Shown piece after piece: positions 238-15,868 of a stretch of 64,000 nt of DNA. Numbering within the stretch: position 1 is the first letter of the stretch; every line of letters starts with the position of its first letter. The notes beneath the pieces were generated by a model that worked only from the letters and a program-made list of their open reading frames with translations, ran no database searches and was not told the origin of the DNA. The position numbers were made by a program, and so were the translations under genes. The stretch comes from Klebsormidium nitens (Eukaryota; Plantae; Klebsormidiophyceae). The stretch covers positions 1 to 64,000 of the forward strand of contig DF237195.1 in the NCBI GenBank assembly GCA_000708835.1, read 5' to 3'.

Positions 238-305
238 CAGCTATGATGCCGACAATTTGGTCACTTGTGCCACTGGTGAGTTTGACTGCAGTAAGCTGAT
301 AATGT
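238..305 (+). ncRNA. Box C/D-like cassette, family A (3' stem decayed)
   Basis: CAGC-TATGATGCC...TGGTCACTTGTGCCA...CTGA(296-299); the downstream GCTG stem is lost. Confidence 0.55.
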
Positions 306-454
306 TCGACGGAGAGCTTGCAGGCCTAGGAAGGCCGCAACTTGCACTGTCTTTCTGATTTTCAGAACCGTACAAGCATAAAGAGCATTGTTGATTAGCG
401 GGCCTTTGAAGGGGTTGCTTCCGCAAAAGTTTGGCTACCCTTAATGAATCGTCG

Positions 455-510
455 GAGTTCTTGTCAACGGTTTGCTTCAGGGCCAAGAATTGTACCAGGT
501 ATGACGCTGT
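455..510 (+). pseudogene. Decayed family C cassette (5' half lost)
   Basis: CAGGGCCAAGAATTGTACCAGGTATGACGCTG aligns with the 3' half of the cassette at 10271 (GAGGGCCAATAGTTGTACCAAAAGTGACGCTG) and sits at the expected position after A; no box C seen. Confidence 0.4.
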
Positions 511-940
511 TCATGTGTTGAATTGCAGCTAGTTCGTGGGCGCCTCCCAATCTATCCTCTCATTTTTTTCGTAGCCGAATTTCGTAGATGTGGAGTTGCC
601 TTTTCAAAATGGCGTTCAGGCGCATCTTCGTTCTTTGACGAGCTACAAAACCACGAGTGTCCAAATTTTGGTAAAGTCAAGAGTCTATCCAGCATGTCGT
701 GCGCTTCGATTGCCACTGCTGCCGTCGCTCCTAACAAGAATCCGCAAAGGTCTCCTCGTTCCGTCTTTCATAAATTTCAAAATGTCTCTCGTGAGGCGCG
801 GCCCCTCTGAAAGTTCCCTACGCTCTGTGCGCCCACCGGGCTGATCAGGTCCCGACTTATGAGGATATTAGTTGGACGAATTGAGTTCGTTCTCCCTATC
901 ACTCGTTGAGCTTGGCTGGCTTGGCCTTGTTTTGAACCTG

Positions 941-1012
941 CAGCGATGAGGACCTTCTCGTACTCTAGACGCTGGCCATCGAAAAGGATGTTGGCTTCGA
1001 CTTCTGGTACTG
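941..1012 (+). ncRNA. Box C/D-like cassette, family D (box D mutated)
   Basis: CAGC-GATGAGGAC...CTCTAGACGCTGGCC...CTGG-T-ACTG. Confidence 0.5.
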
Positions 1013-1409
1013 TTGCTTTGTGCATCCTGGATCCACCAGTGGCACTCAGAAACAATGGTCTCAAAGCAGGGGCTGGTTTATGGTGTTTGCTTCTCAACCG
1101 GCAGAAACCGTCGGACACGTTCTTAAAAGCTAGCCTCAACCAGCGCCTTCCCGTTTGGTTCTTAAATCTTCTACTTAGACTCCATACAAGTCACATGATG
1201 CCAATCCTGATTCAAGAGAAGCCAACGTACCCAAGCTACGCGCACAATCCACCCAAGGCTTCACGACCCATAGCGTCAAATTTTTGAGATGTCGAACTGT
1301 GAATGCGCTTTGACCAATTTTCACTTTCGCTGGATTGCAGCTAGATTTTAGCCACTCCCTCTTTTTCGCGTTGTATGTCAGCAGTCCCGGGTCTATATTC
1401 TTGTCGTAG

Positions 1410-1480
1410 CAGCCGTGATGCCCCATTGAACGGCGAAATATGCCAGCGATCTGGGTGGACGTGATCTGGGGCTGACGCTG
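1410..1480 (+). ncRNA. Box C/D-like cassette, family B
   Basis: CAGC-CGTGATGCCC...CGGCGAAATATGCC...GGGGCTGA-C-GCTG; the CCC/GGG pairing extends the C/D stem. Confidence 0.7.
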
Positions 1481-1991
1481 TGAGTGTATAATGTGCCCAC
1501 TCCGATGGAAGGATAGAATAGCAGTAAGTGAAAGGCACGTGTCATGACTCCGGCCGGAGATCGAGCTTGGCTGTCCAACGGGACTCGAAGATAAAGAACT
1601 TTTTGTAAGCAGAGGTCAGATCGAGGGCCTGAAACGCCACTTCTGAAAGCGGGCTTCAATGGCTCTTTGCCCATGAGGCGTGCCCATCGCAAGTCTGTAG
1701 AAAAACAAACTTCTCATCTGACCACTCACGTCGAAGTCGTAAAAATTTCATTTTTCAGCCATTGGCCCGTCAGCCTATCTAGCCATGCTTTACTGTACAT
1801 GAGATAATGCCAATCTTTTCGTACCCCAGTTTGAGCGCTTGAGAGAATCCCTTCTTTTCTGCAATCCCCAACACAAGCAGAGCTCTCGGGAGGTAGGTCA
1901 GACTGAATTCAAGTGCAGAGCGTCTTCTTCTGACCGCATAAGAGTTCAAATCCCTTTGGCCTGTGTATCTTAATCTGCCAGACTCAACGGG

Positions 1992-2058
1992 CAGCTGTGA
2001 CGCCGAGCACTGGTCGCTTGTGCCACCGAAATACTTCTCTGCGAGCGAGCTGATGCTG
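1992..2058 (+). ncRNA. Box C/D-like cassette, family A
   Basis: CAGC-TGTGACGCC...TGGTCGCTTGTGCCA...CTGA-T-GCTG. Confidence 0.7.
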
Positions 2059-2219
2059 TTGGAGTGCTTGTAGAAGGCCTCAACTGAGATTTTGTGTCCT
2101 CGTTTTCAGTTCCACATAAGCACATGAAGGGGCCTGTCGTCTATAGGAGGTCCTTGAGAGTTGCTCAAGGACCCAAGTATCACAAACCTTGTCAGCAGGT
2201 CTTCATTTTCTCACAATGA

Positions 2220-2287
2220 CAGCGAGGATGACAGACTTTTGGCATCCCCAATGCAAAGGCCAAAAGCTGTTTCTCTCGATGATGCTG
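2220..2287 (+). ncRNA. Box C/D-like cassette, family C
   Basis: CAGC-GAGGATGA...TTTTGGCATCCCC...GCCAAAA (7-bp hairpin)...ATGA-T-GCTG. Confidence 0.65.
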
Positions 2288-2667
2288 CTCATCTGTTCAA
2301 ATGAACCCGGTGTGTGATTACTTCCCGCTGTACGCTCAGATCGCTACTTCCAGCCTTTTTCAGTTATGAAGAGTGCCTTTTACCATGAAGCGTTCAGTCG
2401 TAGCTTCTTCGACGGTTTGGAACCACGAGCTCCTATGCTTCAATAGGTCAGTAATATGATTAATCATGCCGTCTAGAATTAGCCAGTGGTACCAGGATCC
2501 TCTTAAATTTCGCGGAGACTCTGGTCATGCTGACTGTCAATCGGTCCCTAAGGCGCGGGCCCCTCTACCAGGTCCTTTGCTTATCATTTTACGGGTCCGT
2601 ATCGGGTCTAAGAAAATTGTGGAGTCCGATTGTATCACGGATGAAGTTGGCCTTCCTCCGACATCTG

Positions 2668-2735
2668 TGGCTATGAGGACCCGCTGTAGATCTAGACGTT
2701 GGCCACTCTAGAGCGGTAATGCTGGTCTGATGCTG
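2668..2735 (+). ncRNA. Box C/D-like cassette, family D
   Basis: TGGC-TATGAGGACC...TCTAGACGTTGGCCACTCTAGA...GGTCTGA-T-GCTG; GACC/GGTC pairing. Confidence 0.7.
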
Positions 2736-3226
2736 TCGAATGCTGTTGCTTTAAGTATCCTGGATCAAATGTGCGATCGTAATCAAGTTTAAATGCGTCT
2801 CACGAGAATATCAAACACGTTCTCAGACCTTATTCTTGGTCTTCGATCAGTGTTGAGAAACCTACCCTTGGAAGAATCTCCTCAGACTCACATCGATCGA
2901 GATAGTCCCAGATTGCCACTCCTGAAAGAGAAAGCCGACAGTACGTGGGCGGGCAGAGTAAATTCTCAGCACAGATGTGAGGACCACTACGGATTGGGAA
3001 TCCTGAGGGGGTCCAGAGTGGCACCTTGAACCTGCGATGATTATAGACGGTAGCTTTAAATCTCCAAGCTTATGCGCACACGTCCTCGCATAGCTCCATA
3101 CTTCTTGACGTGTCAACAATCGGACAAACTGACATGAAGCAATAGGTCCGGACTCACCCAGCCTTACCTCTGCAAAACACCGCGCTTGTAGTCTTCCCCC
3201 TTCTGCATTCTCTGTCTTCGTCACAG

Positions 3227-3298
3227 CAGCCGTGATGCCCAATAAACCGGCAACCTGTGCAGCCAGCTCTCTGTCCACTTTGTTTGGGGCTGACGCTA
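3227..3298 (+). ncRNA. Box C/D-like cassette, family B
   Basis: CAGC-CGTGATGCCC...CCGGCAACCTGTGC...GGGGCTGA-C-GCTA. Confidence 0.7.
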
Positions 3299-3942
3299 TT
3301 TACGTGTCCGCTCGGATGGAATTGTTTTTGGACAGCTCAAAATATGGCTTCTACGCAACGTCATCACCCGGCTACTTTTAGCAGAGCCCGGTGCTCGAGG
3401 CATGAACTCTGATACCAAGTTTTTGGCGACAGAGTACCGGCAATCTACCCTTCGATGTCGCTCGGTGACGTCAGGCGTTCCGGGTCCCAGGACGCTCACT
3501 TGTAACGAGCGAAGGCTTATACGTACTGGTATGAAAATAGCCAGCTCTAATTATGCTTGTGCCAACCGGATAGATTGCTGACAGCCGTTGGTAACTAGAG
3601 GGAGATCAGAGGGCCCCGTTCTTGAAAGCGGGCTCTAAAACTTTCTTGCCCCATGAGAGCGCTATTGATTGCAGGTATTTATAGAGACAAAATTTTCAAC
3701 TGCCCACTAACGTCAAAATCGTATATACTTTCAAGCCCTTCGCCCACCAGCGTCAATTACTCCCCAACAGTTAATGATGCTCTTTCAGCGTACCTCTTCC
3801 GAGGGCTCTGCAAAAATCTCTCGTTTGCAATTCCCGACACGACGGAAGAGCTCCAGACTTGAAGGATTGATAGAGTCTCTGACTGTGTACGAATGTAGTC
3901 CTTGAGCCCGTCTTTGTGTGGTTGCTGGACTTGATTCGCGTT

Positions 3943-4003
3943 CAGCTGTGATGCCAATCTTCTGGTCGCTTGTGCCAGAAGAACTTCTTCAGATCTGATG
4001 CTG
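3943..4003 (+). ncRNA. Box C/D-like cassette, family A
   Basis: CAGC-TGTGATGCC...TGGTCGCTTGTGCCA...TCTGA-T-GCTG. Confidence 0.7.
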
Positions 4004-4193
4004 TTTGAGTGCTTGCATCAGAGGGCCGCCTAAAATTGGGGAGACCATAATCATAACCATATTATAACCATATCATTACCATAGGGAGACAGCCTGTCGG
4101 CTAGCCGACCTCTTGAGAGTAGCTTTCGCATCACGTTGGCAAGTTCAAAAGCAGCGGCGGCAGCCTTTGTCAACGGGTCGCCTTTTGTCACAA

Positions 4194-4270
4194 CAGCGAG
4201 GATGAGTTACGTGTTGCCTCCTTAGAAGGCATGAGCCACTCGTCAACCAGAAATATCAACAATGACGCTG
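4194..4270 (+). ncRNA. Box C/D-like cassette, family C
   Basis: CAGC-GAGGATGA...TTGCCTCCTTAGAAGGCA hairpin...ATGA-C-GCTG. Confidence 0.6.
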
Positions 4271-4788
4271 TTTCTTCAATCTATCTGCACGGGCACCTGG
4301 TTCGGAGGTAACTCCCCTTCTCCGCTCTGAAGTTTTGCTGTCACAAGCCCGTGCCTATCAAACGCGTGGCGTTAACTCAGATTGCTGCTGACACAACCAG
4401 CTACGGCTAAGAGCGGTTTGCCGGATGATATTTTCTCATCTGCAGCGTATCAAACGTGGGACGGGTACGATCATGCTGCTGAGCCGTAATGGTACACTTT
4501 TGCGCCGAGGTTGCAGATTGTGCCTGCCGTTTCCAAACCGGGGTTCAAACGTAATTCGAGGCCCATGAGGGCACTAATTGCAGTTCGCGACTTTGTAGGA
4601 ATGCACTTCGCCTCAGATTGTTTCTTGAACAGTTGTGCTAGTGGACCTCTTCAACACAAGTGCAGCTTTCGAGAGGTGGCCAAACCCAAACCACTTATTA
4701 ATTGACGGCTTTTGGCTGCATATGCGTAGAACGACTGTTATCTTACCTTGGGAAGCCTCTTCCAAAATTTGGATGAGGGACTAACGGG

Positions 4789-4856
4789 CAGCTGTGATGT
4801 CAAGCACTGGTCGCTTGTGCCAAGCAAGGTCGTGTTAGCGAGAAACGCTGATGCTG
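4789..4856 (+). ncRNA. Box C/D-like cassette, family A
   Basis: CAGC-TGTGATGTC...TGGTCGCTTGTGCCA...GCTGA-T-GCTG. Confidence 0.7.
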
Positions 4857-5026
4857 TTTCAGTAGTCTTAAAAGGCCGCAACTGAAAAGTATGTGTTCCT
4901 TGAGATTCTCGACTCATCATAAGCACAGAGAGGCATGTCGTCTATCAGGCCCCTGAGAGTAGCTTTCGCATCACCTCTGGATCTTTGAGAGGGACCGTCG
5001 TTGGGTCAGCAGTTCTTCTCTTCAAA

Positions 5027-5091
5027 CAGCAAGGATGAATCAACGTATGGCATCCCCAAAGTGCCAGCAAGTGTTCCCAACACTGACGCTG
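5027..5091 (+). ncRNA. Box C/D-like cassette, family C
   Basis: CAGC-AAGGATGA...TGGCATCCCCAAAGTGCCA hairpin...CTGA-C-GCTG. Confidence 0.72.
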
Positions 5092-5533
5092 CTCGTCCAA
5101 TCGATTGCAACCGGTTCTTGCGCACCGCTTCCTCGACAACGATCTCAACACGCAATCCGCTTACCTCGTTATATATGAGAGTCTTTTAACGATTGGGGCG
5201 TTCAGACGTTATTAGCTCTTCTACGTTATTGCGCTCCGGAACCACGAGCATCCAAGTTTGATAGGTTCTGGATCGTCTTGCGACAACTCATGCCGTTGAA
5301 AGCCACCGCTAACGTTGCTCCTTCGGTCGTCGGAGTCTGCGAAAGTCTAGTCATATCAGCTCCGTTAAAACTTTCAACGGTTTCTGAGGATTGAATCCTC
5401 TAGAGGATTCCTTAAAAACAACCTCGTTGACTTCCATAAGTCCATTTTGCTTCGAAAGGACAATCGCCAATTAAATGAGTTCCGTTTGTCTACTCACGTA
5501 CTACTCATGAGCCAGGCACGCATCTCATTCCTG

Positions 5534-5605
5534 AAGCTATGAAGACTCGTTGTGACTCTAGTTGTTGGCCAATCTAGAGGGGTATGAGAGCGAGATCTGA
5601 TGCTG
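5534..5605 (+). ncRNA. Box C/D-like cassette, family D
   Basis: AAGC-TATGAAGAC...CTCTAGTTGTTGGCCAATCTAGAG hairpin...TCTGA-T-GCTG. Confidence 0.7.
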
Positions 5606-5953
5606 CTGCTTTGTGGATTCCGCATCGCCACTGTTATTCCACGAAGTTGCTTCGTCATCGCCACGAAGAATCAAACAAGGTTGAAAAACCTAGCCTTGAT
5701 CTTCGCGGTTTGTTTCGAAATTCCTTTCCATCGACAAGTCTACGAAGACGATGTGGAAATTGCCAGTCCTCAAAGAGAGGCCAACGAAAGATTTCTTTGC
5801 GCAGATTCTTGACGCAAAAGCTCACGCAGAGCTTCAGCCTTTTTAGTTCCTTGACAGTTCTGCGAATTACAATGCCACAGACCCGTACTAAATAACTTTC
5901 ACCAGATGTTTTTGATGTTATAGATCCGCATTCGCCCTCGTTTCTCGTGGCAA

Positions 5954-6020
5954 CAGCAATGATGCCCGGAGAACGGCAACTTGTGCCACTTCCTCTGTCT
6001 CTTCTCTGGGGCTGACGCTG
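5954..6020 (+). ncRNA. Box C/D-like cassette, family B
   Basis: CAGC-AATGATGCCC...CGGCAACTTGTGCCA...GGGGCTGA-C-GCTG. Confidence 0.72.
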
Positions 6021-6556
6021 CGAATATGCCCGCTTGGATGGAAGATGATCACAGGGAGTGAGCAAGGAGCACGTGCCACTGATTTACTTGGCGCTCTTGC
6101 TTGGGCTTGCCAACCTGAATCGGACCACAAAGAACTTTTTCTACGAAGAGCCTTTTCTTTATTAGAGTCAAAGATCAGAGTGCCCGGCCCCCGCTAGTAA
6201 AAGCAGGCTTTGAAATATGTTTTTGGCCCACGAGGGCACTCCGTTTGCAAGACTTTAGAAAGGAAAAGGGTTGTACGGTCGTCGATCACTCACGTCCAAA
6301 GTCAACTTTGGTAATCTTTTGATTCTTCGCCTGCCAGAATATGTAGTGACACATGGTGTCTTGATTAAATTGAAAATTTTGACGCTCTTTCCGCGTACCT
6401 CAAGCTCTGGTAAAAGCTCTCGTCTGCACAGTTCGAGACAATAAAAGCCTTCAGGTACGTCGGCAGCCCCGGATCGTCAGCAGCAGCTTTTGTTTGTAAG
6501 CTACTACGTATACGTCCCTTGGGCCTCTGCCGAACCTAGAGAATCTAGTAATCCGG

Positions 6557-6610
6557 CAGCTATGATGCTGAGCCTCTGGCCATTTGTACCTCCGCGATGA
6601 GGCTGATGCT
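6557..6610 (+). ncRNA. Box C/D-like cassette, family A (short)
   Basis: CAGC-TATGATGC...TGGCCATTTGTACC...GCTGA-T-GCT. Confidence 0.6.
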
Positions 6611-6767
6611 CTTCGAGTGCTGCAGAAGCCGCGAACCGAAAAGGTTTTCGACTTTGCAGATCAGCAAGGCTGTAAGAGGAGCTAGGGCTGATGACTAGTG
6701 GTGCTCAAAAACGAGCTTCTGCATCGGCCACTTTTTTAGCAGCCGTTTCTATCGACGCTCGTTACAA

Positions 6768-6840
6768 CAGCCAGCAAAAATATCGGTGTCTTCCAGGGCC
6801 AAAGCATACATTAAGCCCGATCTTTCCAGGATAACTCTGT
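6768..6840 (+). pseudogene. Decayed family C cassette
   Basis: Expected position (A+211); residual ACAACAGC and CAGGGCCAA motifs; boxes not intact. Confidence 0.3.
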
Positions 6841-7252
6841 CTGTCCGTTTATGAATCATCGAACCGTTTGGCAGCAACTACGTCCAAGTTCGTCAAAGGT
6901 GACAGGGCTTTCCCACAGGGAGTCAGATCTAGCGGCTTCGCTGTTCGGCTTCGAACTACGATTATTTGCGTTTTCGTCCGAGTCACAGGCCGTCTTGCGT
7001 CAACTCACGCCGGCCGAAGCCATATTGCTGACGTGGCACTTCCAGCTTCAATTGGATTCAGCTTGGAAGGCCCTGTCTTTTGGGAAGGGTCTTCGAAACG
7101 CGGCCCCTAAGAAAGATCCTGGTAGTCTGAGCACACTGCACACACGGGCGAAGCAACTTCCTTCATCCCATGTTAGATTCGAAGAGACAGAGTTGGGCGA
7201 TCCGGATTCCTTCTGTATTGGTTGCTGAGCTTGGCTCTTGCTCGTTTTTCTG

Positions 7253-7323
7253 GAGCTATGAAGAACGCCTCGGGCTCTAGACGTTGGCTACTCTAGAACT
7301 GTAGATCGAGCCGTCCGATGCTA
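7253..7323 (+). ncRNA. Box C/D-like cassette, family D
   Basis: GAGC-TATGAAGA...TCTAGACGTTGGCTACTCTAGA hairpin...CCGA-T-GCTA. Confidence 0.6.
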
Positions 7324-7675
7324 CTCCTTTGTGCATCCTTCGATCACCACTGGCATTTGTTCACGGTGCCTCTTGTCCGCCACAATATTTTAGAAACGTT
7401 CCAAAATCCGTTTTCGTCATTCTTACACGGCTGAAATTGGAAAGATCCTCAACGGAGACACCTCAACGAAAAGAAACAAAGAGTTCGCCGCTCCTGAAAG
7501 AAACGCCAAAGGTATCAATATTATGCGACTGAATCCAGTCGTAGCCTCACGCGTCGCTTCAACCCGTCAACAATCTTTATTTTGCGTGCGATAGAATCAG
7601 GTTCAACCTCTTGACTCTGCAAATCTATAGTTGTTTATCTCGTTTATCTCATCATTCTCTATGTCTTCGTCACGC

Positions 7676-7743
7676 CAGCCGTAATGCCCAGTGGACCGGT
7701 AACATGTGCCAGGCCTGCCATAACGCTTTTAAGGCTGACGCTG
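7676..7743 (+). ncRNA. Box C/D-like cassette, family B
   Basis: CAGC-CGTAATGCCC...CCGGTAACATGTGCCA...GGCTGA-C-GCTG (box C G>A). Confidence 0.6.
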
Positions 7744-7953
7744 TGTGGGCGCCACTCGGATGGAAAAGGGAGATAGGAAGCGAGCGAGAGGCACGTGTCC
7801 TTACTTCGGCTCGCGCTCGTGCTTGTGCTTGCAAAACAAATCTCCGGAGTCTCAAACGGCACGGAGAGCTCTTGAGGAAGTAGTGGCGGCAATAGACAGT
7901 CGAGGCCGGCGCTCGCGACAGCAAGGATTGATATGCTTCTGTATACAACAGCG

Positions 7954-8031
7954 CAGCAAGGATGACCATCAGAGTTTGGCATTTGGGAACATTTGCCGCA
8001 CCTGCCTGCACGTCTACACGACCGGATGCTG
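7954..8031 (+). ncRNA. Box C/D-like cassette, family C (box D mutated)
   Basis: CAGC-AAGGATGA...TTGGCATTTGGGAACATTTGCC...CGGA-T-GCTG; a duplicated start ACAGCAAGGATTGA lies ~35 nt upstream. Confidence 0.55.
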
Positions 8032-8280
8032 CCTAGTAGATGCACCTTGGAGTTCAGTATCTCTCTGCGCTTTGGTTTAATTTGATTCTGAAAACCCTAC
8101 TTTGAGTCATCAGGGCTAAGGAGAAGTGGAATGTGAAAAACTTTAAGCGCATGATTCCACCCGGAGTCTCACGCATGGCTTCCGTTCCGCTGTTAGAAGT
8201 AGGCGTTGGAACCATCCTCACCGATCTGCGGAAGTTACCAATTGTTTCTATTCTGCGTTCCCCCTAGTTTTTCGTTACAG

Positions 8281-8348
8281 CAGCCGTGATGCCCAGTGAC
8301 CGGCGCAGCTGTGCTAATTCTGGTTTCTAATGGATTGGGCTGACGCTG
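8281..8348 (+). ncRNA. Box C/D-like cassette, family B
   Basis: CAGC-CGTGATGCCC...CCGGCGCAGCTGTGC...GGGCTGA-C-GCTG. Confidence 0.7.
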
Positions 8349-8472
8349 TGTATGTGCACTTTTAATTATGTGGTTCAAGACAGAATCGACAAAAGGGACC
8401 TGTCGGCACCGCGCGTAGTGCTTCTTTACATGTTGGTACACCTCATTCAATAGAAGGATCACTTCGTCCCGA

Positions 8473-8547
8473 CAGCGAGGATGAGGAAACTTTGCATTGG
8501 TATCCCCTACGAAAGGGCGGAGCCACACAACACCATCAACGACGCTG
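8473..8547 (+). ncRNA. Box C/D-like cassette, family C
   Basis: CAGC-GAGGATGA...TTGGTATCCCC...ACGA-C-GCTG. Confidence 0.6.
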
Positions 8548-8969
8548 TGCATCGGTTTCATCTGCACCCATCTTGAAAGTTCACCTTCCGGTTCCCGACT
8601 CCTTTGCTCATCTCAACCGCGTCGCATATCTGAGTGCCTTGTCAGTGCGGTCATTCGTGGCTTCTTCGTTACTAGGTTCCAATCACCTTCATGATTGCCC
8701 ACATTTTAATCAAGGGAGAAACCTTCAGAAGAGAAGTCAATTGATGTGCTCATCAAAGCCAGTGCTACCGGAGACCCTTCACAAAACCCTCGAAGGCCTT
8801 GCCATTTCCTCTCTCTGGTTCCACTGGCGCGGCCGCTCAGTAGACTTTGTTACTTTGTTACTTTGCTCGGTCTCCCTAATCAACCTCTACAACTTGTTTG
8901 TGTCCGGTCCTAGCTTGAGAATGAGCAATCTACGATTTCGTGTGTGTCCTGGGCCTCGCCCCGAAAATG

Positions 8970-9044
8970 TAGCTTTGAGGACCCAATGTGAATCTAGTCG
9001 ACGTTGGCTAGAGTGCACGTGGGATTGGAGAAGGTCTGATGCTG
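8970..9044 (+). ncRNA. Box C/D-like cassette, family D
   Basis: TAGC-TTTGAGGACC...TCTAGTCGACGTTGGCTAGA hairpin...GGTCTGA-T-GCTG. Confidence 0.65.
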
Positions 9045-9344
9045 CTGTTTGTGCAATAATGGATCATTACTGGCACTTGAAGAAGTTGCTTCTCGACTGC
9101 GGAGATGTTTAGAAAGGGTCTCAACAGCTTGCATTCATCTTCCTGACTGGTCTTGGAGGTCTTTCGCGGACAACAGATTCGCCACGGAGATTGCACCTCT
9201 TGAAAAGAAGCCAAAAGCATCAATCTTACGCGCACGAGCGCACCTAAAGCATCGTTCAATCCTGTTTCGTGATGTCAGCAGGATTCGGAACCGGGATTTT
9301 TCTGGTATTCACCACCGGGAGCCCCTTTGTCTTCGTCGTAGCTA

Positions 9345-9408
9345 CAGCCGCGAGTCCCATGAAAATGGCAGCCTGTGCCACGTGTTCCACTTCTTCGGGG
9401 CTGACGCT
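9345..9408 (+). ncRNA. Box C/D-like cassette, family B (box C decayed)
   Basis: CAGC-CGCGAGTCCC...TGGCAGCCTGTGCCA...GGGGCTGA-C-GCT. Confidence 0.5.
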
Positions 9409-10046
9409 TCAACGTACCCGTGTTCGCTCGAAACCAATCATAGGGCAGCAAGTAGGCCGAAACCAAGTGTCATCATCTTATCCGACTCTCGTGCTTGTGC
9501 TTGCCGACCCGAGCGGAACGAGAAATGACTGTGTGTAGTCCGGTCCGGTGACGCGAACGGTCCCGCCAGAAAGTTTGAAGTCAGCTGGGCACTTACCATT
9601 CGCATGAGTGTAGAAAGAGAGATTTCTCCTCACAATCAATTAAGATTACATCACATTCGCTTCTTCTCCGACCTCACAAGTTTGCATGCCAGTAACTGGA
9701 CAAGGTCTCAAGAAGCTCTACCAATATCTCGTGGAAATCCTGACGTTCCGTCTCGAGCTTGGAACCAGCCCCGCGAGCTAGGCAGGAAAATTTCATGTGT
9801 CGCTGCTATTATCTTTTTTCGGTCCGTCAAGTAATGCACTTTTGACTTGTCCATCTTTCAAGGCAAACCGCCTGCAGTGGCTTCTGCTAACTTCGGCTGC
9901 GAAATCGGATCCGATTGCAATTCCCAACGCAATAGGAGCTCTTGAAATAAAGGCCAGGCCAGCTTCAGCCGCGGATTTGTTTAGTCCGCGACTGAATTGC
10001 TTGGCCCATATATCTTTTTCTTCCAATATTTGAGAGAGCACACGGG

Positions 10047-10110
10047 CAGCTTTGATGCCAAGCAATGGTCACATGCGCCACTGGTATGCATACTTGACGA
10101 GCTGATGCTG
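10047..10110 (+). ncRNA. Box C/D-like cassette, family A
   Basis: CAGC-TTTGATGCC...TGGTCACATGCGCCA...GCTGA-T-GCTG. Confidence 0.68.
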
Positions 10111-10270
10111 TTCGAGGTGCTTGGAGACGGGCCCAATTGGAAACGCATTTTTGCTTCCTACCTCCGCGCATTGAGAGGCTTGTTGCAGGCGGGCCTCCGA
10201 AAGTAGATTCGCCACCACGTCGCCTTGATCGAGTGGCACCCGGATCTTTGTGCAGATTATCCTTCCGTAA

Positions 10271-10333
10271 CAGCAAGGATGATTAACACTTGGTATCCTC
10301 AGAGGGCCAATAGTTGTACCAAAAGTGACGCTG
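10271..10333 (+). ncRNA. Box C/D-like cassette, family C
   Basis: CAGC-AAGGATGA...TTGGTATCCTCAGAGGGCCAA hairpin...GTGA-C-GCTG. Confidence 0.65.
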
Positions 10334-10756
10334 TTGATCTGTTCAACTGGAGCCGGCTCGTGGGCGCAGCTGCCCGTGTCATGCTTGCTAGCTCATTCCA
10401 GTCCAGCATTTTTGAAAGCGGATTCTTCGTTCAAGGGGCGTTCAGTCGTCGCGCGCTTTGTCGTTTCCATGCTTCGTATCAACGAGTATCCACGTTTGGG
10501 TCAGTACTAAATGTTATCCAGGCAATCACGCGGGTCGGAAAGCGGTGCTACCATAGCTCCTTTGAGGGATGCTCGGAGGCCCTGTCGAATCTCCCTTCAG
10601 AAGGTCTTTGAGGCGTAGCACCAATATATATTTGGGTCCACTTGTTCGTGCGCATGCGGCGACCAAATTCCATTACTTCGTACCACCTCTGAAGAATACT
10701 GGGCGATTCAGATTTCGTTTGTATACTTGTGAACATTAGCCCTGCTCAGAGCTCTG

Positions 10757-10830
10757 CAGCTATGTATGACGACTCCCCGTGATCCCAGACGTTGGAAGCT
10801 CTAGAACGAGTCCTTGGTCAGGGTATGCTG
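10757..10830 (+). ncRNA. Box C/D-like cassette, family D (decayed)
   Basis: CAGC-TATGTATGACGAC...CCAGACGTTGG...CTCTAGA...GTA-T-GCTG. Confidence 0.45.
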
Positions 10831-11091
10831 CTACAGCTGCTTTGCATCACTGATCATCTCTGGCGTTCAACGGTCGAAACAGTGCTTCTCGAGTGCGGGC
10901 TACTAGTAGAAAAACGTACTCGGACGAAGCGTACTCTGGTCATTCTAATGCTGCTGTATCAAAATGAATCACCGAACAACCTGCAATAATTGACCTGGCT
11001 ACACGGATGGGCAGATATTTTGCTTGTCAAGGGACGTGATCTATGCATGTATCGGAGTCGAGTGCTTGAAGCAGTACCGTTTTCAGAAGAG

Positions 11092-11148
11092 TAGCAATGA
11101 TGAATCAGGAAGCCCGGCACTCTCCGAAGTTCCATCAGCCTGAGTGTT
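11092..11148 (+). ncRNA. Box C/D-like cassette with canonical box C
   Basis: TAGC-AATGATGA (canonical box C at 11097-11103)...CCGGCACTC...CTGA (11140-11143); terminal stem weak. Confidence 0.5.
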
Positions 11149-11828
11149 CAAAAATTATTGAAGCTGCCCAGCAATCAGATTTAAACCCGCCACCTTTTTA
11201 GCTGGTTAGAGCGGTGTTAATGGCCCGCATCACCGCTTCCTCAGATTGGCGGGTCTTATTGCTCGATCGAAAAGACTCATGGTTTGTGCTCGTCAGTTCT
11301 TGCCTCGGGCAGGCCCATTCTTTTAGAAAACTAGCTGCCCAGCAGCGTCTCTTGAATCTTTGTTCCACTCGAAACACCATCCGCACCATTGCTTCAACGC
11401 CTTTCGGGTCCCAAAAGGTGCGACTGATCTCGTTACGTGACGGCAAAAATGTATGATTTGAGTAGAGGCCGTTTGAAGCCTCTGACCACCTGTTGTGCTA
11501 AGACGTGCAAACCCCTCAAAGCGATCACAACAGGAAAAAAAGGAGTACGGAGTCGCCTTCTGGTCGCCCTTCTGGCCATAGGTTTCCAGAGCTTTTTGAA
11601 AGCTCACATTTGGTAAAATCATAACACACCGACACTTCGAATCATCCATTCCCTATGCCTGTCTCGGTGACCAACGTTCCTAGGTCACTTTCTTTGCCTG
11701 TCTTGATGAATGACGTGCCTAGATCTTATACGACGTGAGGGTTTCAAAAGTCTTCGTGGGCGGCAGGCGCGCAGGTAGTGGCGGCTGTTCCGACTGCTGA
11801 CGTTTCGTCGGTACCTCCTCACTTGGAG

Positions 11829-12078
11829 CAGCAAGGATCAGCAAGCTTACTTGGCACTGGCTCAAAATTCACTATAAATCAATACCCGGTTTAAGATCGT
11901 GTGCTGAGGCCGTTTTGATCTCAGAAACTCAGCTTTTAAGATCAAAGTGGTCTGACACAACGTTTAAGACCAAATTAGCCTGAAAACCTGAATAGGTTCA
12001 AGATCGAAGTGGCCTCACAACGATCTTAAACCGGGCTATCATTTATAGTGAAAGAGGAGATCAATGGGTCTGAAGCTG
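11829..12078 (+). pseudogene. Family C-like cassette interrupted by a MITE
   Basis: CAGC-AAGGATCA...TTGGCACT before the MITE and TCTGA-A-GCTG after it; removing 11870-12050 restores a 69-nt cassette. Confidence 0.6.
11870..12050. mobile_element. 181-bp CACTA-like miniature inverted-repeat element
   Basis: Ends CACTATAAATCAATACCCGGTTTAAGATCGT... and ...ACGATCTTAAACCGGGCTATCATTTATAGTG (~31-bp imperfect TIR starting CACTA); internal TT(A/C)AGA(T/C)C-type subterminal repeats; no perfect 3-bp TSD. Confidence 0.7.
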
Positions 12079-12682
12079 TGCGCCTGGAAACCCGCAGCCG
12101 CCGGGCTCTCCACGAAATTCACACCGATGTCAAGAGAAGCGCGTATAGAACTAACTGGGTGCGCAAAACTCTGTGCGCGCACCGGCCGTTACGGATCTAA
12201 TCATCTCAGATCCTTCTTTTTGCCTCGTGTTTTTCGCTTGCTACAGGCTCTTACTCTTCCGGGAAGATCCAGACCATTAAGCAAAGGGCAAAGCTACCAA
12301 ACCTGTGCATTTTCACGAGCGGCCAGGATGCTAGGTGTCTGGCCCTGCGCCAGTAATAGGGCCGAATCCACGTGCTGACGCTCTTCAGTCTCCTTCCCGC
12401 CATAGGACGACGGATCCCTGCGTAGCCTTGCAAGTTTCGAAGGATTTCTTCAGCGCCCGCGCCCTTCCCAAATAAGCAGCACGATGAAGCTTCTGATAGT
12501 AAAACCGTTGGATAACCTTAAGCAATGAGCAGCTTCGTTCCCAAATGAGAGGCTCTGCGAAAATTCTCAATGTCCGCTAGCGTATCTTCTCCGTTTCTCG
12601 CCGTCGCGTCCGTTATCCTCTCTAACACCAACCTGACAGAAAGTGAAGTCCGTGAGAGCGTCGGTCTGCCTGAGTCTGCAGA

Positions 12683-12758
12683 CAGCAACGATGCAACTCG
12701 AAGTGGCACACGCAGAAGGAACGCCAAACGTGCTCATCGCCCCTATGCACTGATGCTG
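12683..12758 (+). ncRNA. Box C/D-like cassette, family E
   Basis: CAGC-AACGATGCA...AAGTGGCACACGCAGAAG...CTGA-T-GCTGTTTGCGAAG; paralog at 14766. Confidence 0.65.
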
Positions 12759-12904
12759 TTTGCGAAGTCCTGGAGAGCGGGTCGGCGCCTTGAATTCTCA
12801 TTCGTTTCGTGTGGCCATCCATTCCTTTCTGCATAATTGACAATTTGATCCTTCTGTCCTTCATGATTATTTTGAGTGCCTATGATTTCCTGTTCGTCTT
12901 ACAG

Positions 12905-12975
12905 CAGCAAGGATACTAATCTTCTTCGGCACTTCTGCCGGAGTGACAAACTCCAAGTGCTTAAGTCTGACGCTG
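12905..12975 (+). ncRNA. Box C/D-like cassette, family C'
   Basis: CAGC-AAGGATAC...CGGCACTTCTGCCG hairpin...TCTGA-C-GCTG; paralog at 14973. Confidence 0.65.
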
Positions 12976-13432
12976 CGCATCATGAGTCGAAGCGTTACAA
13001 TCCCGCATGTTAAAGCATTATTTGGTGCCATTCTCTTGCCTGTTTTACCATCTTACCGGTGTTCCTTGAGGCTTCACTTGTGGCTGTATTCGGGCTCTTC
13101 TGGCTTCGACTATTTTCGGCGCAGGTTCCAAGATTCCCTTTGGGAAGATTCTGATGAGTCTCATCTTGGTTCGCAAATCTCGATCCGCAGTGGGCTAGAT
13201 TCCGCTCGCACTGCCGCAGAGGATTTGCAACCGGCAGTCCCTAGCTGCCTTTTGATTCGTCTCTCAAAGCGCTGCTTGCGTTCCGGATTCGTGCACATAG
13301 AAAGATGTGGGCACACCTGTAAAATGGATTCCGTACACGTCCTGACCCCTGGCGAATTTTTTGGAATTGAGTATCTTGGCTGACGTCACCATCGCAACTA
13401 GGCAGTGATCAACCCACAGTCGCCAGGACTAA

Positions 13433-13489
13433 ACGAAGGGATGGCTCTGGTCTGGGGACTGAGGAACTCGTGGTGGACCCTGATGCCGT
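13433..13489 (+). ncRNA. Box C/D-like cassette, family F
   Basis: ACGAAGGGATGGCTCTGGTCTGG...CCTGA-T-GCCGT; paralog at 15449. Confidence 0.45.
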
Positions 13490-13772
13490 ATTATAGGTGC
13501 AATATTCATGTACACAAGGTTAAACGAGGCGAAAAATGTCTGCTTCTCGGTCGAAGATCGGCCGTATGAACGATCAAGAAGGTCCTTCAAACGAGGCGAA
13601 TCAATCGCTCAAACCACGAGGACGTAAATGAGGGCCAATGACCCGTTGGATGGTCGAAACATCTGCGCAACCTAATCAACTCTCGCAACCTGAATGCCGC
13701 GTGGACCGCCCATGTCGATTTTGGAACGTGTTGAATTACGAAGAAAAAGAAAGAAGAGGGCTTTCTTTAGAG

Positions 13773-13843
13773 CAGCAATGATGCCAAGCCTGTTGCCCGC
13801 GCCCAGTGGCGTCGCGAGTTTTCTCGGAAGGTTTCTGATGCTG
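13773..13843 (+). ncRNA. Box C/D-like cassette, family A'
   Basis: CAGC-AATGATGCCAA...TGCCCGCGCCC...TCTGA-T-GCTGCGC; paralog at 15807. Confidence 0.68.
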
Positions 13844-13900
13844 CGCGTTCCCTGTACAAACGTCACAATCATATTGATGTCGACTTTTAGCACTTTCGAG

Positions 13901-13967
13901 CAGCAAGGATGGATTTGGACCTGGCGCTCTCTTCAGAGCGGCACGTCTAGTACGCTGACCTGAGCTG
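13901..13967 (+). ncRNA. Box C/D-like cassette, family C-like
   Basis: CAGC-AAGGATGG...TGGCGCTCT...CTGA-GCTG. Confidence 0.55.
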
Positions 13968-14765
13968 GCTCTGATTTTACATTTCCTTTGTTTTAGGCAA
14001 TGCTTTCAATCAGTTTAGAGTCTTTACCCGTTCAAATGGAGTACGTACAGAAAAATTTTGCTGCAACGCAGAACTTTATTCGGAGGGCACACAAGGCAGG
14101 AAGTTTGCGCGACCTCTTTTTTGTTTTCTTCAAAAGTGTCGATCTTTTCAGGTCGTGATTGCGACCTTCGCATAAGAAACGGCGATGATGAGCCCATTCG
14201 ACAACGTCGGGATTGACAGTACCGACTGGTCTTGGAGGTGATATGACGCCACGGGTGCGGTCCGTTTTGATTTTTTCCATTGTGCCGGGGTGCTCCGCGC
14301 CTCGTCTTCTTCTGGAAAAACAATTACGTCCAGCAAACGCTCACTTTATCTAGATTAGCACACCGTAATTCTGGCGAAGTCTTTCAACCTGATCTAACGT
14401 ACGGCCATTCGCTTATGCACCTGTCCGTAACACTGTCATGACCACGAGCCACAGTCTACAGTCTTCTTAGCGTAAACTCGTCATCTGAGAGCTGCCATCT
14501 GTTTCAAACGGGATGCATCGGCGTTCAAGACTTCGATCTTCTCCTGAAACGGGTAGTGTGACTTGACGAAGTCAGCGCTGACACTCGTGCCGGCCGCATA
14601 AGGCTTTTTCCCATTCCCTTGGTTCCTCGCCCTTGTGCTCAAAACGGTCTCGGCTCCGTGGTGGTCCAGAGGATCGTCAACCACCTCCACAACCCTCCTT
14701 CCAAGCTGGTAAGCCCGGAAGAAACCGAAATCCCTGACAAGGGTTGTTTCTCTTTAAACTGCGGA

Positions 14766-14845
14766 CAGCAAGGATGCAACAGGAAGTGGCGCGCGCAGAA
14801 GCAAGCCACAAACCTCTCTTCCGTAATCTCATCGGACTGATGCTG
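14766..14845 (+). ncRNA. Box C/D-like cassette, family E
   Basis: CAGC-AAGGATGCA...AAGTGGCGCGCGCAGAAG...CTGA-T-GCTGTTTGCGAAG. Confidence 0.68.
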
Positions 14846-14972
14846 TTTGCGAAGTTGCGAAGTGTGGGAGCACGGCGCCCACTTAAAGAACCAACGTCTT
14901 GCTTGCGTATTAACTCGCTGCAGCTTTGAACCTCGGTTGCTTCCTTCTGATGTCCTTGATTGATCCAAAGAG

Positions 14973-15042
14973 CAGCAAGGATTACCAATCAGCTGGCCCG
15001 GCACTCCCGCCAAATGCGCTGTTGTTGCTTGATCTGACGCCG
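14973..15042 (+). ncRNA. Box C/D-like cassette, family C'
   Basis: CAGC-AAGGATTAC...CCGGCACTCCCGCC...TCTGA-C-GCCG. Confidence 0.6.
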
Positions 15043-15448
15043 TTCACTAGAATTTAGTGACTTCACTGGGGCCAAAACTGAGGGACAGCGAAAAGCACGG
15101 GCTGTCGCCTTTGCTCGCCCGGTGTTCCTAGAAACTTAGCAGCTGGTGGTCGCTCTGAGTACGAAACTCTTCGCAACCCACCTTCCTGTCTGAAAAAGGG
15201 TCTGATGACTCCCTTGTTCCGCAAAGCCCATCTTCGACGCGCTGGCGGAAGGATTTGCGACCGGCCAATACTTATAGCGCCTGCGCCTTTCTGATTCCTC
15301 ACATCTGAATCCCCGCTGCTTGCGTCAGCAGAATCAGAGCCCGGAAGACGGCGTGGGAATAAGCTGCCAACTTGATACCTCCCCTGTGATATGGCGATCA
15401 GCTAAGCTGACGTCATCGTCCTAAAGCAGGAATGATCTGCCACTTCTA

Positions 15449-15514
15449 CACGAAGGAATGGCTCTGGCCTGGAGGACCATGAATGCGAGGGGAATATGAC
15501 GTGGGCTGACGCTG
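15449..15514 (+). ncRNA. Box C/D-like cassette, family F
   Basis: ACGAAGGAATGGCTCTGGCCTGG...GGGCTGA-C-GCTG. Confidence 0.45.
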
Positions 15515-15806
15515 CATTACTGGCGTGTTTGTCTTCCCGTGACGATCAGATGAACAAACGAACACATCCTCGTGCTTCCTCGGAAGGTTTGGCCGTACAA
15601 ACGTATAAAGAGGGTCCTCTAAACCGAGGCAAATTGACTGCGTCAACCTGAGGGACATGGTCCAATCCTAACCCCTCGTCGATGTCAAACCGGCTGTGCA
15701 ACCTGGTGCAACCATCACCACTCAGGATCAGCTGTGTGGATAGACATGTTGGCTTGGCAACGTTGACGAATTACGCGGGAGTTTCAGACGGGACTTTTCT
15801 TTGAAG

Positions 15807-15868
15807 CAGCCATGATGCCAATCATAGTGCCCCGCACCCGCCGCAACCAAAGACTTTGACTGATGCTG
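15807..15868 (+). ncRNA. Box C/D-like cassette, family A' (last recognisable unit)
   Basis: CAGC-CATGATGCCAA...TGCCCCGCACCC...CTGA-T-GCTGCGC. Confidence 0.68.

Follow-up and report, generated by a model that had tools for sequence, protein, structure and literature searches.

A run of short, box C/D-like units on one strand of Klebsormidium nitens DNA raises the question of whether these units are snoRNA genes and, if so, whether they serve as rRNA guides, act as orphans with another function, or merely record past duplication. The window considered here is the whole analysed stretch of 64 kb. The locus is probably a large one-strand box C/D snoRNA cluster that has been shaped by repeated tandem duplication with gain and loss of copies.

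Organization of the Array

By reading and alignment, 39 units of 56-91 nt were recognized at 237-15870, all on the + strand and separated by spacers of 53-678 nt (median 345) (Table 1). A tandem array of C/D snoRNA-like genes on one strand is confirmed at these coordinates. The first-pass annotation had counted at least 35 same-strand units in 238-15868, slightly fewer than found here, and had expected the array to run past the left edge, where it is indeed cut off by the window start. Part I (237-10832) is comprised of an A-C-D-B super-unit of ~1.9 kb in approximately six repeats. In Part II (11093-15870), the units are more varied and an F-G-E-H block is duplicated. Similarity between paralogues (70-88%) is limited to the units and short flanks. 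Decayed units are interspersed with intact ones, and in ~11/39 a box has been lost or only a fragment is left.

Several searches delimit the array. When stem, GA[TGA]G, TGA, and GCT were combined in a strict regular expression, 17 matches fell on the + strand within 1410-15868; one other lay elsewhere on that strand, and the - strand gave two over the 64 kb. The pattern CAGCNRTGATGCC...CTGAYGCTG was found six times versus none in 100 dinucleotide-preserving shuffles. With filters off, a sequence model trained on 28 units yielded 31 matches at E<=1, all on the + strand of 237-15870, and none in the remaining 48 kb or on the - strand; it also recovered B6, which was outside the training set. No H/ACA members were recognized in the array. 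A check against Rfam, proposed at first pass, returned no family for the units even at E<=10.

Table 1. Units of the array, with motifs given as box C/box D, and associated elements.
Unit	Position	Strand	Boxes and stems	rRNA pairing
A1 (family A)	237-306	+	AUGAUGC, CUGA present; 3' stem decayed (AAUG)	14 nt ending 1 nt before box D; 18S UUGUUGCAGUUAAA, 3 G-U; 5/5 rDNAs
C0 (3' fragment, family C)	484-511	+	only UACCA..AUGACGCUG left; aligns with C6 3' end; weak model match, E 0.81
D1 (family D), degenerate	940-1017	+	box C GAUGAGGACC kept; box D, second hairpin arm gone
B1 (family B)	1408-1482	+	GUGAUGCCCC/GGGGCUGA; stem CAGC/GCUG
A2	1991-2060	+	box C GUGACGC, position 5 changed; CUGA, stem intact
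C1 (family C)	2219-2289	+	AGGAUGA; box D weakened to AUGA; 8-bp internal hairpin CUUUUGGC/GCCAAAAG	11 bp; 18S GAGAAACGGCU; 4/5 rDNAs
D2	2670-2736	+	UAUGAGGACC/GGUCUGA; internal hairpin CUCUAGA..UCUAGAG
B2	3225-3300	+	GUGAUGCCC/GGGGCUGA
A3	3943-4005	+	boxes, stem intact; internal hairpin UUCUGG/CCAGAA; fold z -2.95
C2	4193-4272	+	AGGAUGA; box D AUGA; terminal stem 7 bp
A4	4788-4858	+	GUGAUGU/CUGA; terminal stem 7 bp
C3	5026-5093	+	AGGAUGA/CUGA; internal hairpin UGGCA/UGCCA
D3	5535-5607	+	UAUGAAGAC/AUCUGA; hairpin CUCUAG/CUAGAG
B3	5953-6021	+	AUGAUGCCC/GGGGCUGA; hairpin GGCA/UGCC
A5 (short)	6556-6613	+	AUGAUGC/CUGA; 58 nt; central element diverged
D4, degenerate	7253-7328	+	box D CCGA; box C AUGAAGA
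B4, degenerate	7676-7745	+	box C GUAAUGC, G3 lost; box D intact
C4, degenerate	7953-8033	+	AGGAUGA kept; box D lost (CGGA)
B5	8279-8350	+	GUGAUGCCC/GGGCUGA; top model match, 34.9 bits
C5, degenerate	8472-8547	+	AGGAUGA; box D ACGA
D5	8970-9046	+	UUGAGGACC/GGUCUGA; strong internal hairpin; fold z -2.4
B6, degenerate	9345-9408	+	box C lost (GCGAGUC); box D, stem retained
A6	10046-10112	+	UUGAUGC/CUGA; terminal stem 8 bp
C6	10270-10335	+	AGGAUGA; box D GUGA; hairpin UUGGUA/UACCAA
D6, degenerate	10757-10832	+	both boxes decayed; family D alignment persists
S1 (single)	11093-11148	+	AAUGAUGA/CCUGA; terminal stem weak
S2, split by 185-nt palindromic insert	11827-12079	+	AGCAGC-AAGGAUC ... GGGUCUGA-AGCUG flank insert
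S2 insert	11868-12052		self-complementary element
S3	12319-12385	+	AGGAUGC/CUGA; terminal stem GAGCG/CGCUC
S4	12476-12535	+	ACGAUGA/AAUGA; stem AAGC.GC/GC.GCUU
F1	12682-12760	+	ACGAUGC/CUGA	12 nt ending 1 nt before box D; LSU GUAUAGGGGCGA, 1 G-U; 5/5 rDNAs
G1	12903-12977	+	AGGAUAC/CUGA; hairpin CGGCA/UGCCG	10 bp adjoining box D; LSU 5' ACUUAAGCAU
E1 (long, 90 nt; E2 paralogue)	13403-13492	+	GUGAUCA/CUGA
H1	13771-13845	+	AUGAUGC/CUGA; terminal stem 6 bp
I1	13899-13972	+	AGGAUGG/CUGA; stem GAGCAGC/GCUGGCUC; fold z -2.9
S5	14180-14250	+	GAUGAUGA/AUGA; terminal stem GGCG/CGCC, compensatory vs CAGC/GCUG
F2 (F1 paralogue)	14765-14847	+	AGGAUGC/CUGA; terminal stem 8 bp	GUGGCGCGCG, then D'-like CAGA; 18S CGCGCGCUAC; 4/5 rDNAs
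G2	14971-15044	+	AGGAUUA/CUGA; 3' stem GCCG
E2 (E1 paralogue)	15426-15516	+	AAUGAUC/CUGA-CGCUGC
H2	15805-15870	+	AUGAUGC/CUGA	13 Watson-Crick pairs directly 5' of box D; 18S UCAAAGUCUUUGG; 3/5 rDNAs
Conserved spacer block, example between C and D units	2364-2446	+
Further spacer block copies	about 576-672, 5178-5264, 8630-8710, 10418-10500

Boxes, Stems, and RNA Structure

In 28 aligned units, the box C core keeps G3 in 27 and A4 in all, the box D core keeps G in all and A in 27, and the terminal stem CAGC/GCUG is kept in 24-28. The covariation of the stem beyond the boxes, reported earlier, holds for family B (GAUGCCC/GGGCUGA) and family D (GAGGACC/GGUCUGA), and as the first stem II pair beyond the boxes, 10 units have C-G and 6 have A-U. 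For the terminal stem and stem II, 73.6% of cells are paired; sliding the partner columns lowers this to 27-50%, so the pairing is specific to the proposed register. The terminal stems of S5 and S3 have other sequences with pairing retained, and the family C internal hairpin shifts by compensatory change from UUGGCA/UGCCAA (C1 and C3) to UUGGUA/UACCAA (C6). Compared with shuffled sequence, the unit interiors are more structured, at a mean z of -0.76 (p 0.01), and the same holds against spacer pieces (p 0.003). Each unit has one kink-turn, and paralogues retain the boxes, the stems, and a short central hairpin. This hairpin, often with a GGCA/UGCC-type stem, lies at the usual site of the C'/D' boxes, none of which could be recognized in the units apart from a D'-like CAGA in F1 and F2. 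The earlier view of box C/D kink-turn RNA genes amplified into a large same-strand array is supported by these data.

It may be asked whether small RNAs are released at all, since the locus could instead produce a lncRNA with cis kink-turns (e.g., as a platform for Snu13/L7Ae-type proteins) or be repetitive DNA without RNA function. Public runs indeed gave no small-RNA or precursor signal, but snoRNAs would probably escape such libraries and assemblies. Contigs assembled from seven RNA runs contributed one 262-nt piece (2631-2892, run X7, depth 2) spanning D2, and 4700-6100 was absent from all listed runs; for libraries of this kind, such thin matches are not evidence against the array. On the other hand, the conservation is of the kind expected for paired RNA, compensatory changes being seen in three different helices; it is confined to one strand, and rRNA antisense elements lie at the correct place in some units. 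A locus that releases no small RNA is hardly credible.

Complementarity to rRNA

H2, F1, A1, G1, F2, and C1 each have 10-14 bp of box-anchored complementarity to a conserved segment of 18S or LSU rRNA; in two of them the box is atypical (the D'-like CAGA of F2 and the degenerate box D of C1). Box-D-anchored duplexes, counted if the rRNA segment is conserved in at least three of the five reference rDNAs (metagenomic units of unknown taxa, not this organism's own), occur at 4/37 unit CUGA sites and 13/566 background sites (Fisher p 0.016). Total unit-rRNA complementarity showed no excess (91 sites versus 67-98 in shuffled/reversed controls), and complementarity on the + strand of the array did not clearly exceed that of the - strand or of the remaining window, in a search that covered conserved rRNA. 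For the conserved central elements of families A-D, no rRNA complement was conserved across 120 rDNA loci beyond the antisense controls. F1 retains the D guide and F2 the D' guide, a partitioning of tasks expected after duplication of a double guide. The designation "orphan" given to the array at first pass is thus apt for the conserved elements of families A-D, which have no conserved rRNA complement, but not for the array as a whole, six units of which match rRNA.

These six matches, with correct box geometry, could point to an ordinary guide cluster in which essentially every intact unit methylates some site in the rRNA or snRNAs of this alga, the targets having been missed for want of the organism's own rRNA and because many sites fall in lineage-specific or variable regions. 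The central elements could then be guides of degenerate D' boxes, similar to the CAGA in F1 and F2, and duplicated plant snoRNA isoforms are said to gain new methylation sites (PMC7671301). However, besides having no complement beyond the controls, the family A-D elements contain no GA dinucleotide able to form a D'/C' motif, the single strands beside the hairpin in several units (C6 and C1 among them) are just 3-7 nt and too short for a guide, and the slot 5' of box D is unlike in every paralogue. A cluster composed only of such guides appears unlikely.

Divergence of Guide Segments and Spacers

Paralogue identity in the slot 5' of box D is 0.50-0.52 (0.45 for shuffles), and spacer identity is 0.51-0.63 (0.45-0.47 for shuffles), with the weakly conserved spacer at 0.51-0.53, comparable with the slot. 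Such divergence is expected from relaxed constraint alone and gives no sign of selection for diversity, so the description of the locus as rapidly diversifying is not borne out. The ~11 decayed units suggest that copies are gained and lost, not kept up as a library. The proposed role of the locus as a defence or regulatory guide library finds no support. Overall, a C/D array and its amplification remain from the first-pass interpretation, whereas uniform orphan status, diversification, and defence do not.

The same measurements bear on the idea of lineage-specific orphan C/D RNAs with a non-rRNA function, as in SNORD115/116, in which families A-D would act on mRNAs or other RNAs via the central hairpin/loop or a retargetable box D slot. 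Conservation of boxes, stems, and central elements alongside a variable slot would fit this idea, as would the lack of an Rfam match and of conserved rRNA complements to the central elements. Against it, the slot does not exceed weakly conserved spacer in divergence, ~11 units are decaying, complementary 12-mers linking units with the remainder of the window number 20, in line with the ~15 expected by chance, and some units are plainly rRNA-guide-like. We consider this distinctly improbable.

Within the spacers, the blocks GCGUUCAG(U)CGU and GGAACCACGAG are retained in 5-6 repeats, with AG before and, at one aligned column in 5/6 copies, GU after. The conserved block could be a host-gene exon or another degenerate k-turn unit.

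Proposed Expression and Function

With duplication and copy turnover as the preferred reading, one or a few long precursor transcripts would span the array, either as a plant-like polycistron or as a non-coding host gene with the units in its introns. In each unit, the CAGC/GCUG stem would join box C and box D into a kink-turn that is predicted to bind Snu13, which would recruit Nop58, Nop56, and fibrillarin. Exonuclease trimming of the precursor to the protected stem could then yield RNAs of ~60-90 nt. Units with a 10-14 nt rRNA match 5' of box D (H2, F1, A1, G1, and perhaps C1), together with F2, whose putative guide segment is the one before the D'-like CAGA, should guide 2'-O-methylation of the rRNA nucleotide that pairs with position five upstream of the box. 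Among families A-D, the segment 5' of box D has drifted in most copies, leaving orphans or redundant copies, and ~11 units are already pseudogenes.

Comparison with Known snoRNA Systems

In Euglena gracilis and trypanosomatids, as here, different snoRNA genes occur in reiterated tandem clusters, which in those systems are transcribed polycistronically. Their repeats are near-identical and the members are mostly clear rRNA guides, often double guides, whereas the present repeats are old and diverged, with a single kink-turn per unit and most units without a target.

The mammalian SNORD115/SNORD116 and SNORD113/114 arrays similarly contain tens of same-strand tandem C/D units, mostly without an rRNA target. 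In contrast to these, several families alternate per repeat here, similarity among copies is much lower (70-88% within units), canonical rRNA guides occur among the units, a host gene with one snoRNA per intron is only hinted at by the AG/GU-flanked spacer blocks, and imprinting has no counterpart.

Described plant snoRNA clusters usually hold just a few genes, whereas here a stretch of at least 16 kb contains at least 39 units, its four-unit super-units recurring approximately six times. The array also differs from land plant and Chlamydomonas reinhardtii clusters in having no recognized H/ACA members, C'/D' boxes, or Rfam homologue, and most of its members have no recognizable rRNA target. 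These polycistronic and intronic clusters, whose multigene families arose by local duplication, resemble it in their many one-strand C/D genes at few-hundred-base spacing and in their paralogous isoforms with diverged guides, decayed copies, and orphans inside (PMC2875012, PMC7671301). They also share its boxes and a terminal stem of 4-6 bp. Plant snoRNAs lie mostly in polycistronic clusters that include decayed copies and orphans (PMC2875012), and most snoRNAs of plants and Chlamydomonas belong to multigene families produced by extensive duplication, Euglena also being cited for a clustered, isoform-rich organization (PMC7671301). The contrast with plant clusters drawn at first pass is thus one of scale and not of kind, large polycistronic families being described as the norm (PMC2875012, PMC7671301). 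The locus is best read as a cluster of the plant/green-algal type, unusually large and containing a mix of canonical guides, orphans, and pseudogenes.

Detection and extent of the array

When positions 1-17000 are read, a cassette recurs on a single strand, with a 5' CAGC, 1-3 bases, a box C-like (R)UGAUGN or AGGAUGA, 35-70 bases, (C)UGA, 1 base and GCUG. A strict regular expression finds 17 plus-strand cassettes in 1410-15868 and, elsewhere in the 64 kb, one on the plus and two on the minus strand; a tighter pattern gives six matches against none in 100 dinucleotide-preserving shuffles. A sequence model trained on 28 units was run over both strands with filters off and returned 31 matches at E<=1, every one of them on the plus strand within 237-15870. 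This model also recovers decayed copies that were absent from training, namely B6, C4 and the 3' parts of C0 and E2 (units are named by family, A-I, and copy, with S1-S5 for singles). The cassette signal is far above chance.

Reading and alignment together delimit 39 units of 56-91 nt, all on the plus strand and separated by spacers of 53-678 nt (median 345), with fragments and degenerate copies included. The first-pass annotation had proposed about 35 same-strand units extending beyond the left edge of the window; the array and its single strand stand, and the count is now 39. With regard to its extent, the first unit begins at 237 and its upstream flank is similar to that of A6, so the array probably does run past the left edge. 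At the other end, the AT skew is negative over 1-16000 and reverses sign beyond 16000, which fits a single transcription unit ending near 15.9 kb. The array went undetected by Tandem Repeats Finder because its period is about 1.9 kb and its copies are too diverged, and an exact-protein look-up of two ORFs from the array matched no record.

Several long plus-strand ORFs in GC-rich, purine-skewed DNA elsewhere in the window are unrelated to the array. Two of them were translated (26053-28134 and 52871-56221) and give charged, low-complexity proteins, and a Pfam search of nine long ORFs outside the array in the window found no domains.

Organization of the array

The array comprises two parts of different composition, listed below with the other features of the window. 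In a self-BLAST, paralogues resemble each other (70-88%) only within the units and in the short sequences flanking them, so the duplications are old. When all families are aligned jointly, the stem and the boxes prove common to them, along with a central UGGC/UGGU whose distance from box C is fixed, which makes a common origin likely. The possibility that this central motif pairs with the NCCA end of tRNAs was dropped, the motif being the 5' arm of an internal hairpin.

Positions of the units, spacer blocks and other features in the window
Feature	Positions	Strand	Description
Part I	237-10832	+	super-unit of ~1.9 kb, order A-C-D-B, about six repeats with losses and rearrangements
Family A starts	237, 1991, 3943, 4788, 6556, 10046	+	
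Family C starts	2219, 4193, 5026, 7953, 8472, 10270	+	fragment at 484
Family D starts	940, 2670, 5535, 7253, 8970, 10757	+	
Family B starts	1408, 3225, 5953, 7676, 8279, 9345	+	
Part II	11093-15870	+	more varied: singles S1-S5 and I1, plus the F-G-E-H block
F-G-E-H block, starts	F 12682/14765, G 12903/14971, E 13403/15426, H 13771/15805	+	~2.05 kb, two copies
Unit F1	12682-12760	+	
Unit F2	14765-14847	+	
C-to-D block	2364-2446; also ~576-672, 5178-5264, 8630-8710, 10418-10500		GCGUUCAG(U)CGU and GGAACCACGAG
Block just 3' of B	~1500-1550, 3307-3320, 6030-6085, 9420-9480		starts (C/U)GGAUGGAA, ends near CUGA or AUGA
B-to-A block	1665-1730, 3644-3720, 6221-6300		GCCCAUGAGG; copy 1 has CAAACUUCUCAUCUGAC, 17 bp to LSU with 3 G-U
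A-to-C block			AAGCA..GAGAGG..CUGAGAG..UGCUU
Tandem repeat, 11 nt	4044-4083		ACCAUAUCAUA, 3.5 copies, in the spacer 3' of A3
Palindromic element	11868-12052		185 nt, self-complementary, ~73% arm identity, inserted in S2
16 nt from the G2 centre	15000-15015		GGCACUCCCGCCAAAU
Identical 16 nt	35924-35939	+	GGCACUCCCGCCAAAU
Long ORFs	26053-28134, 36044-40188, 52871-57900	+	600-1100 aa

Kink-turn core and internal hairpin

In the 28-unit alignment, box C (consensus RUGAUGA, near the 5' end) keeps G3 in 27 of the 28 units, A4 in all of them, U5 in 24 and G6 in 26, while 18 units have U at position 2 and nine have G (the AGGAUGA variant); box C is lost in about five further units. Box D (CUGA, near the 3' end) is equally well kept (C 24/28, U 27/28, G 28/28, A 27/28), as is the terminal CAGC/GCUG stem (24-28 of 28 per position). 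The kink-turn core is almost invariant.

The terminal helix is 82% paired and stem II, the pairing beyond the boxes, 61%. For both helices together, 73.6% of cells are paired, compared with 27-50% after a shift of the partners by 1-3 columns. The first pair of stem II is C-G in ten units and A-U in six, so both sides have changed together. The pairing level and this compensatory pair bear out the stem covariation that had been noticed between GAUGCCC/GGGCUGA and GAGGACC/GGUCUGA units. Terminal stems that differ in sequence still pair, as in S5 (GGCG/CGCC) and S3 (GAGCG/CGCUC).

The unit interiors hold no UGAUGA/CUGA-like pair that could serve as internal C'/D' boxes, and a short hairpin is found there instead; a D'-like CAGA after a conserved element occurs only in F1 and F2. 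Eukaryotic snoRNAs often have degenerate C'/D' boxes, and the missing pair therefore does not bar the units from box C/D membership. The hairpin stems are of the GGCA/UGCC type in families B, C and G, CUCUAGA/UCUAGAG in D and GUGGC/GCCAC in F. Within family C, UUGGCA/UGCCAA in C1 and C3 is replaced by UUGGUA/UACCAA in C6 and the C0 fragment, which is a compensatory change. In addition, the interiors of the units carry more structure than shuffled sequence (mean z -0.76, p 0.01) and than pieces of spacer (p 0.003). The nearly invariant core, the register-specific pairing, the compensatory changes and the structured interiors are evidence that conservation acts on RNA structure.

Decay and drift of the copies

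An element has been lost in about 11 of the 39 units. Damage to box C is seen in B4, B6 and D6. Five units outside the 28-unit alignment (D1, D4, C4, C5 and D6) have a lost or weakened box D. Furthermore, C0 is a fragment, the 3' stem of A1 has decayed, and S2 is split by the palindromic insert. This insert resembles a MITE or a long hairpin; its segment at 12000-12039 is matched by an RNA contig from run X10 that runs on into unrelated sequence, and the insert is therefore probably a dispersed repeat.

Identity between paralogues is highest in the central element, at 0.80 in family A (shuffled 0.47) and 0.63 in family B (shuffled 0.45). It is 0.50-0.52 in the slot 5' of box D, the D slot (shuffled 0.45). 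Within the A-to-C spacer, weakly conserved stretches reach 0.51-0.53 (shuffled 0.44-0.46) and the other stretches 0.62-0.63 (shuffled 0.46-0.47). The D slot is different in every copy, yet its divergence is no greater than that of poorly conserved spacer. Nothing here indicates faster-than-neutral change, and the earlier description of the locus as rapidly diversifying is not upheld.

Complementarity to rRNA and other RNAs

A scan against Rfam, proposed in the first-pass annotation, gave no match at gathering scores in the whole window and three noise-level hits at E<=10 in 1-17000; none of the snoRNA families described in Rfam was matched by any unit. For target prediction, eukaryotic rDNA was taken from metagenomes by means of an LSU 5' motif, and Rfam served to mark out five complete 18S-5.8S-LSU units. 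Unanchored complementarity between the units and these five rDNAs is not enriched (91 sites versus 67-98 in reversed, complemented or shuffled controls), nor is rRNA complementarity clearly enriched over the whole array strand. Accordingly, the many spacer matches of 10-17 bp, including 1706-1722 and 10434-10449, are not counted as evidence. When the duplex has to end 0-2 nt before CUGA and to be conserved in at least three of the five rDNAs, it is found at 4 of 37 CUGA sites in units and at 13 of 566 background sites (Fisher p 0.016).

Antisense elements of at least 10 nt that end 1-2 nt before box D or D' are present in H2, F1, A1, G1, F2 and possibly C1, all against rRNA other than the organism's own. 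In yeast, human and plants, the regions that contain the paired segments bear 2'-O-methyl groups.

Box-anchored duplexes between units and rRNA, with methylation sites predicted from the sequences
Unit	Duplex	rRNA segment	rDNAs	Predicted site
H2	13 Watson-Crick pairs	18S UCAAAGUCUUUGG	3/5	third A of UCAAAG in 18S GAAAUCAAAGUC
F1	12 bp, 1 G-U	LSU GUAUAGGGGCGA	5/5	U at fourth position of GUAUAGGGGCGA
A1	14 bp, 3 G-U	18S UUGUUGCAGUUAAA	5/5	U at fourth position of UUGUUGCAGUUAAA
G1	10 bp, 1 G-U	LSU 5' ACUUAAGCAU	3/5	
F2	10 bp before D'-like CAGA	18S CGCGCGCUAC	4/5	
C1	11 bp, degenerate box D	18S GAGAAACGGCU	4/5	

The units had been regarded as orphans throughout. This no longer applies to the six with box-anchored complementarity to conserved rRNA; for the others, the reference rDNAs yielded no conserved target. 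For the elements kept within each of families A, B, C and D, no complement is conserved among 120 rDNA loci beyond antisense controls. U2 snRNA, 5S rRNAs and tRNAs from metagenome loci show only noise-level complementarity to the units, and for the remainder of the window the complementarity is as expected by chance. The central 16-mer of family A gave 35 scattered hits in viral contigs, which were taken as about chance and rejected. Likewise, the 16 nt from the G2 centre recur once in the window, at a place with no snoRNA boxes around it, so this identity is probably due to chance.

The two F units differ in what they have kept. F1 retains the D guide to LSU, and its counterpart of the F2 D' guide has two changes; F2 retains the D' guide to 18S, next to the D'-like CAGA, and has partly lost the D guide. 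Judging from these sequences, F1 and F2 appear to be duplicates of a double guide that split the work.

Conserved spacer blocks and transcription

Several spacer blocks are kept in 5-6 repeats. In the C-to-D block, the GCGUUCAG(U)CGU motif could pair with LSU in a conserved segment (16 bp, 3 G-U, at 10434-10449). The block has AG before it and GU after it, the latter at one aligned column in five of six copies, and RNAalifold gives no convincing consensus structure for the C-to-D spacer (-3.5 kcal/mol). This block may be an exon of a host gene or a degenerate extra snoRNA. The two blocks after B may be extra decayed kink-turn units outside the CAGC/GCUG pattern. The AG/GU-flanked blocks could represent short host-gene exons, with each intron holding one snoRNA. 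The precursor may be polycistronic or a spliced host transcript.

The units are arranged as in a plant-type cluster, all 39 lying on the plus strand, closely spaced (median spacer 345 nt) and apparently without individual promoters; no recurrent TATA-like element was seen upstream of them on reading by eye. The array DNA occurs in four DNA runs from a single sample. None of the listed RNA runs with the same species label contains the stretch. Assembled contigs of seven RNA runs were compared with 1900-7890 and 10000-15990; one 262-nt contig (2631-2892, depth about 2) covers D2, and the remaining matches are partial (33-52 nt, 90-98% identity), one of them at the palindromic insert. No spliced RNA appeared among them. 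Assemblies of such libraries do not capture non-polyadenylated RNAs of 60-90 nt, so these sparse matches do not count against expression.

Comparison with known snoRNA arrays

Plant snoRNAs are mostly found in polycistronic clusters, with orphans and decayed copies among the members (PMC2875012). Multigene families account for most snoRNAs of plants and Chlamydomonas, and extensive duplication has led to isoforms with new sites; Euglena is similar to them in snoRNA organization (PMC7671301). The array is real and is the same kind of object as the plant and Chlamydomonas clusters. What sets it apart from them is its scale (at least 39 units in at least 16 kb), super-units built from several families, units that consist of a single kink-turn plus a hairpin, and a high share of units without a recognizable target.

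For streptophyte algae, a full-text literature search returned no description of a snoRNA repertoire, and these repertoires appear to be essentially undescribed. For annotation, about 28 likely snoRNA genes are added that Rfam-based pipelines miss. If the units are expressed, they would provide a plant-lineage case of duplicated guides losing, dividing and changing their targets (for example, F1 and F2), as well as a case for how orphan snoRNAs arise, and the array might count as a large orphan C/D array outside the mammals. The suggestion of a regulatory or defence guide library has found no support so far.

Like the mammalian SNORD115/116 loci, the array is large, tandem and mostly made up of orphans. 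Unlike in those loci, the copies are much more diverged, canonical guides are included, host introns are candidates only, and lack of rRNA or snRNA complementarity does not extend to all copies, six units being complementary to rRNA. It is conceivable, though rather improbable, that families A-D (six-fold amplified, 24 units) are streptophyte-specific single-kink-turn C/D RNAs in which a conserved hairpin replaces C'/D' and which function outside rRNA methylation, via the central element or a freely retargetable D slot. Such a non-rRNA class would be the plant-lineage counterpart of the mammalian SNORD115/116 orphan arrays.
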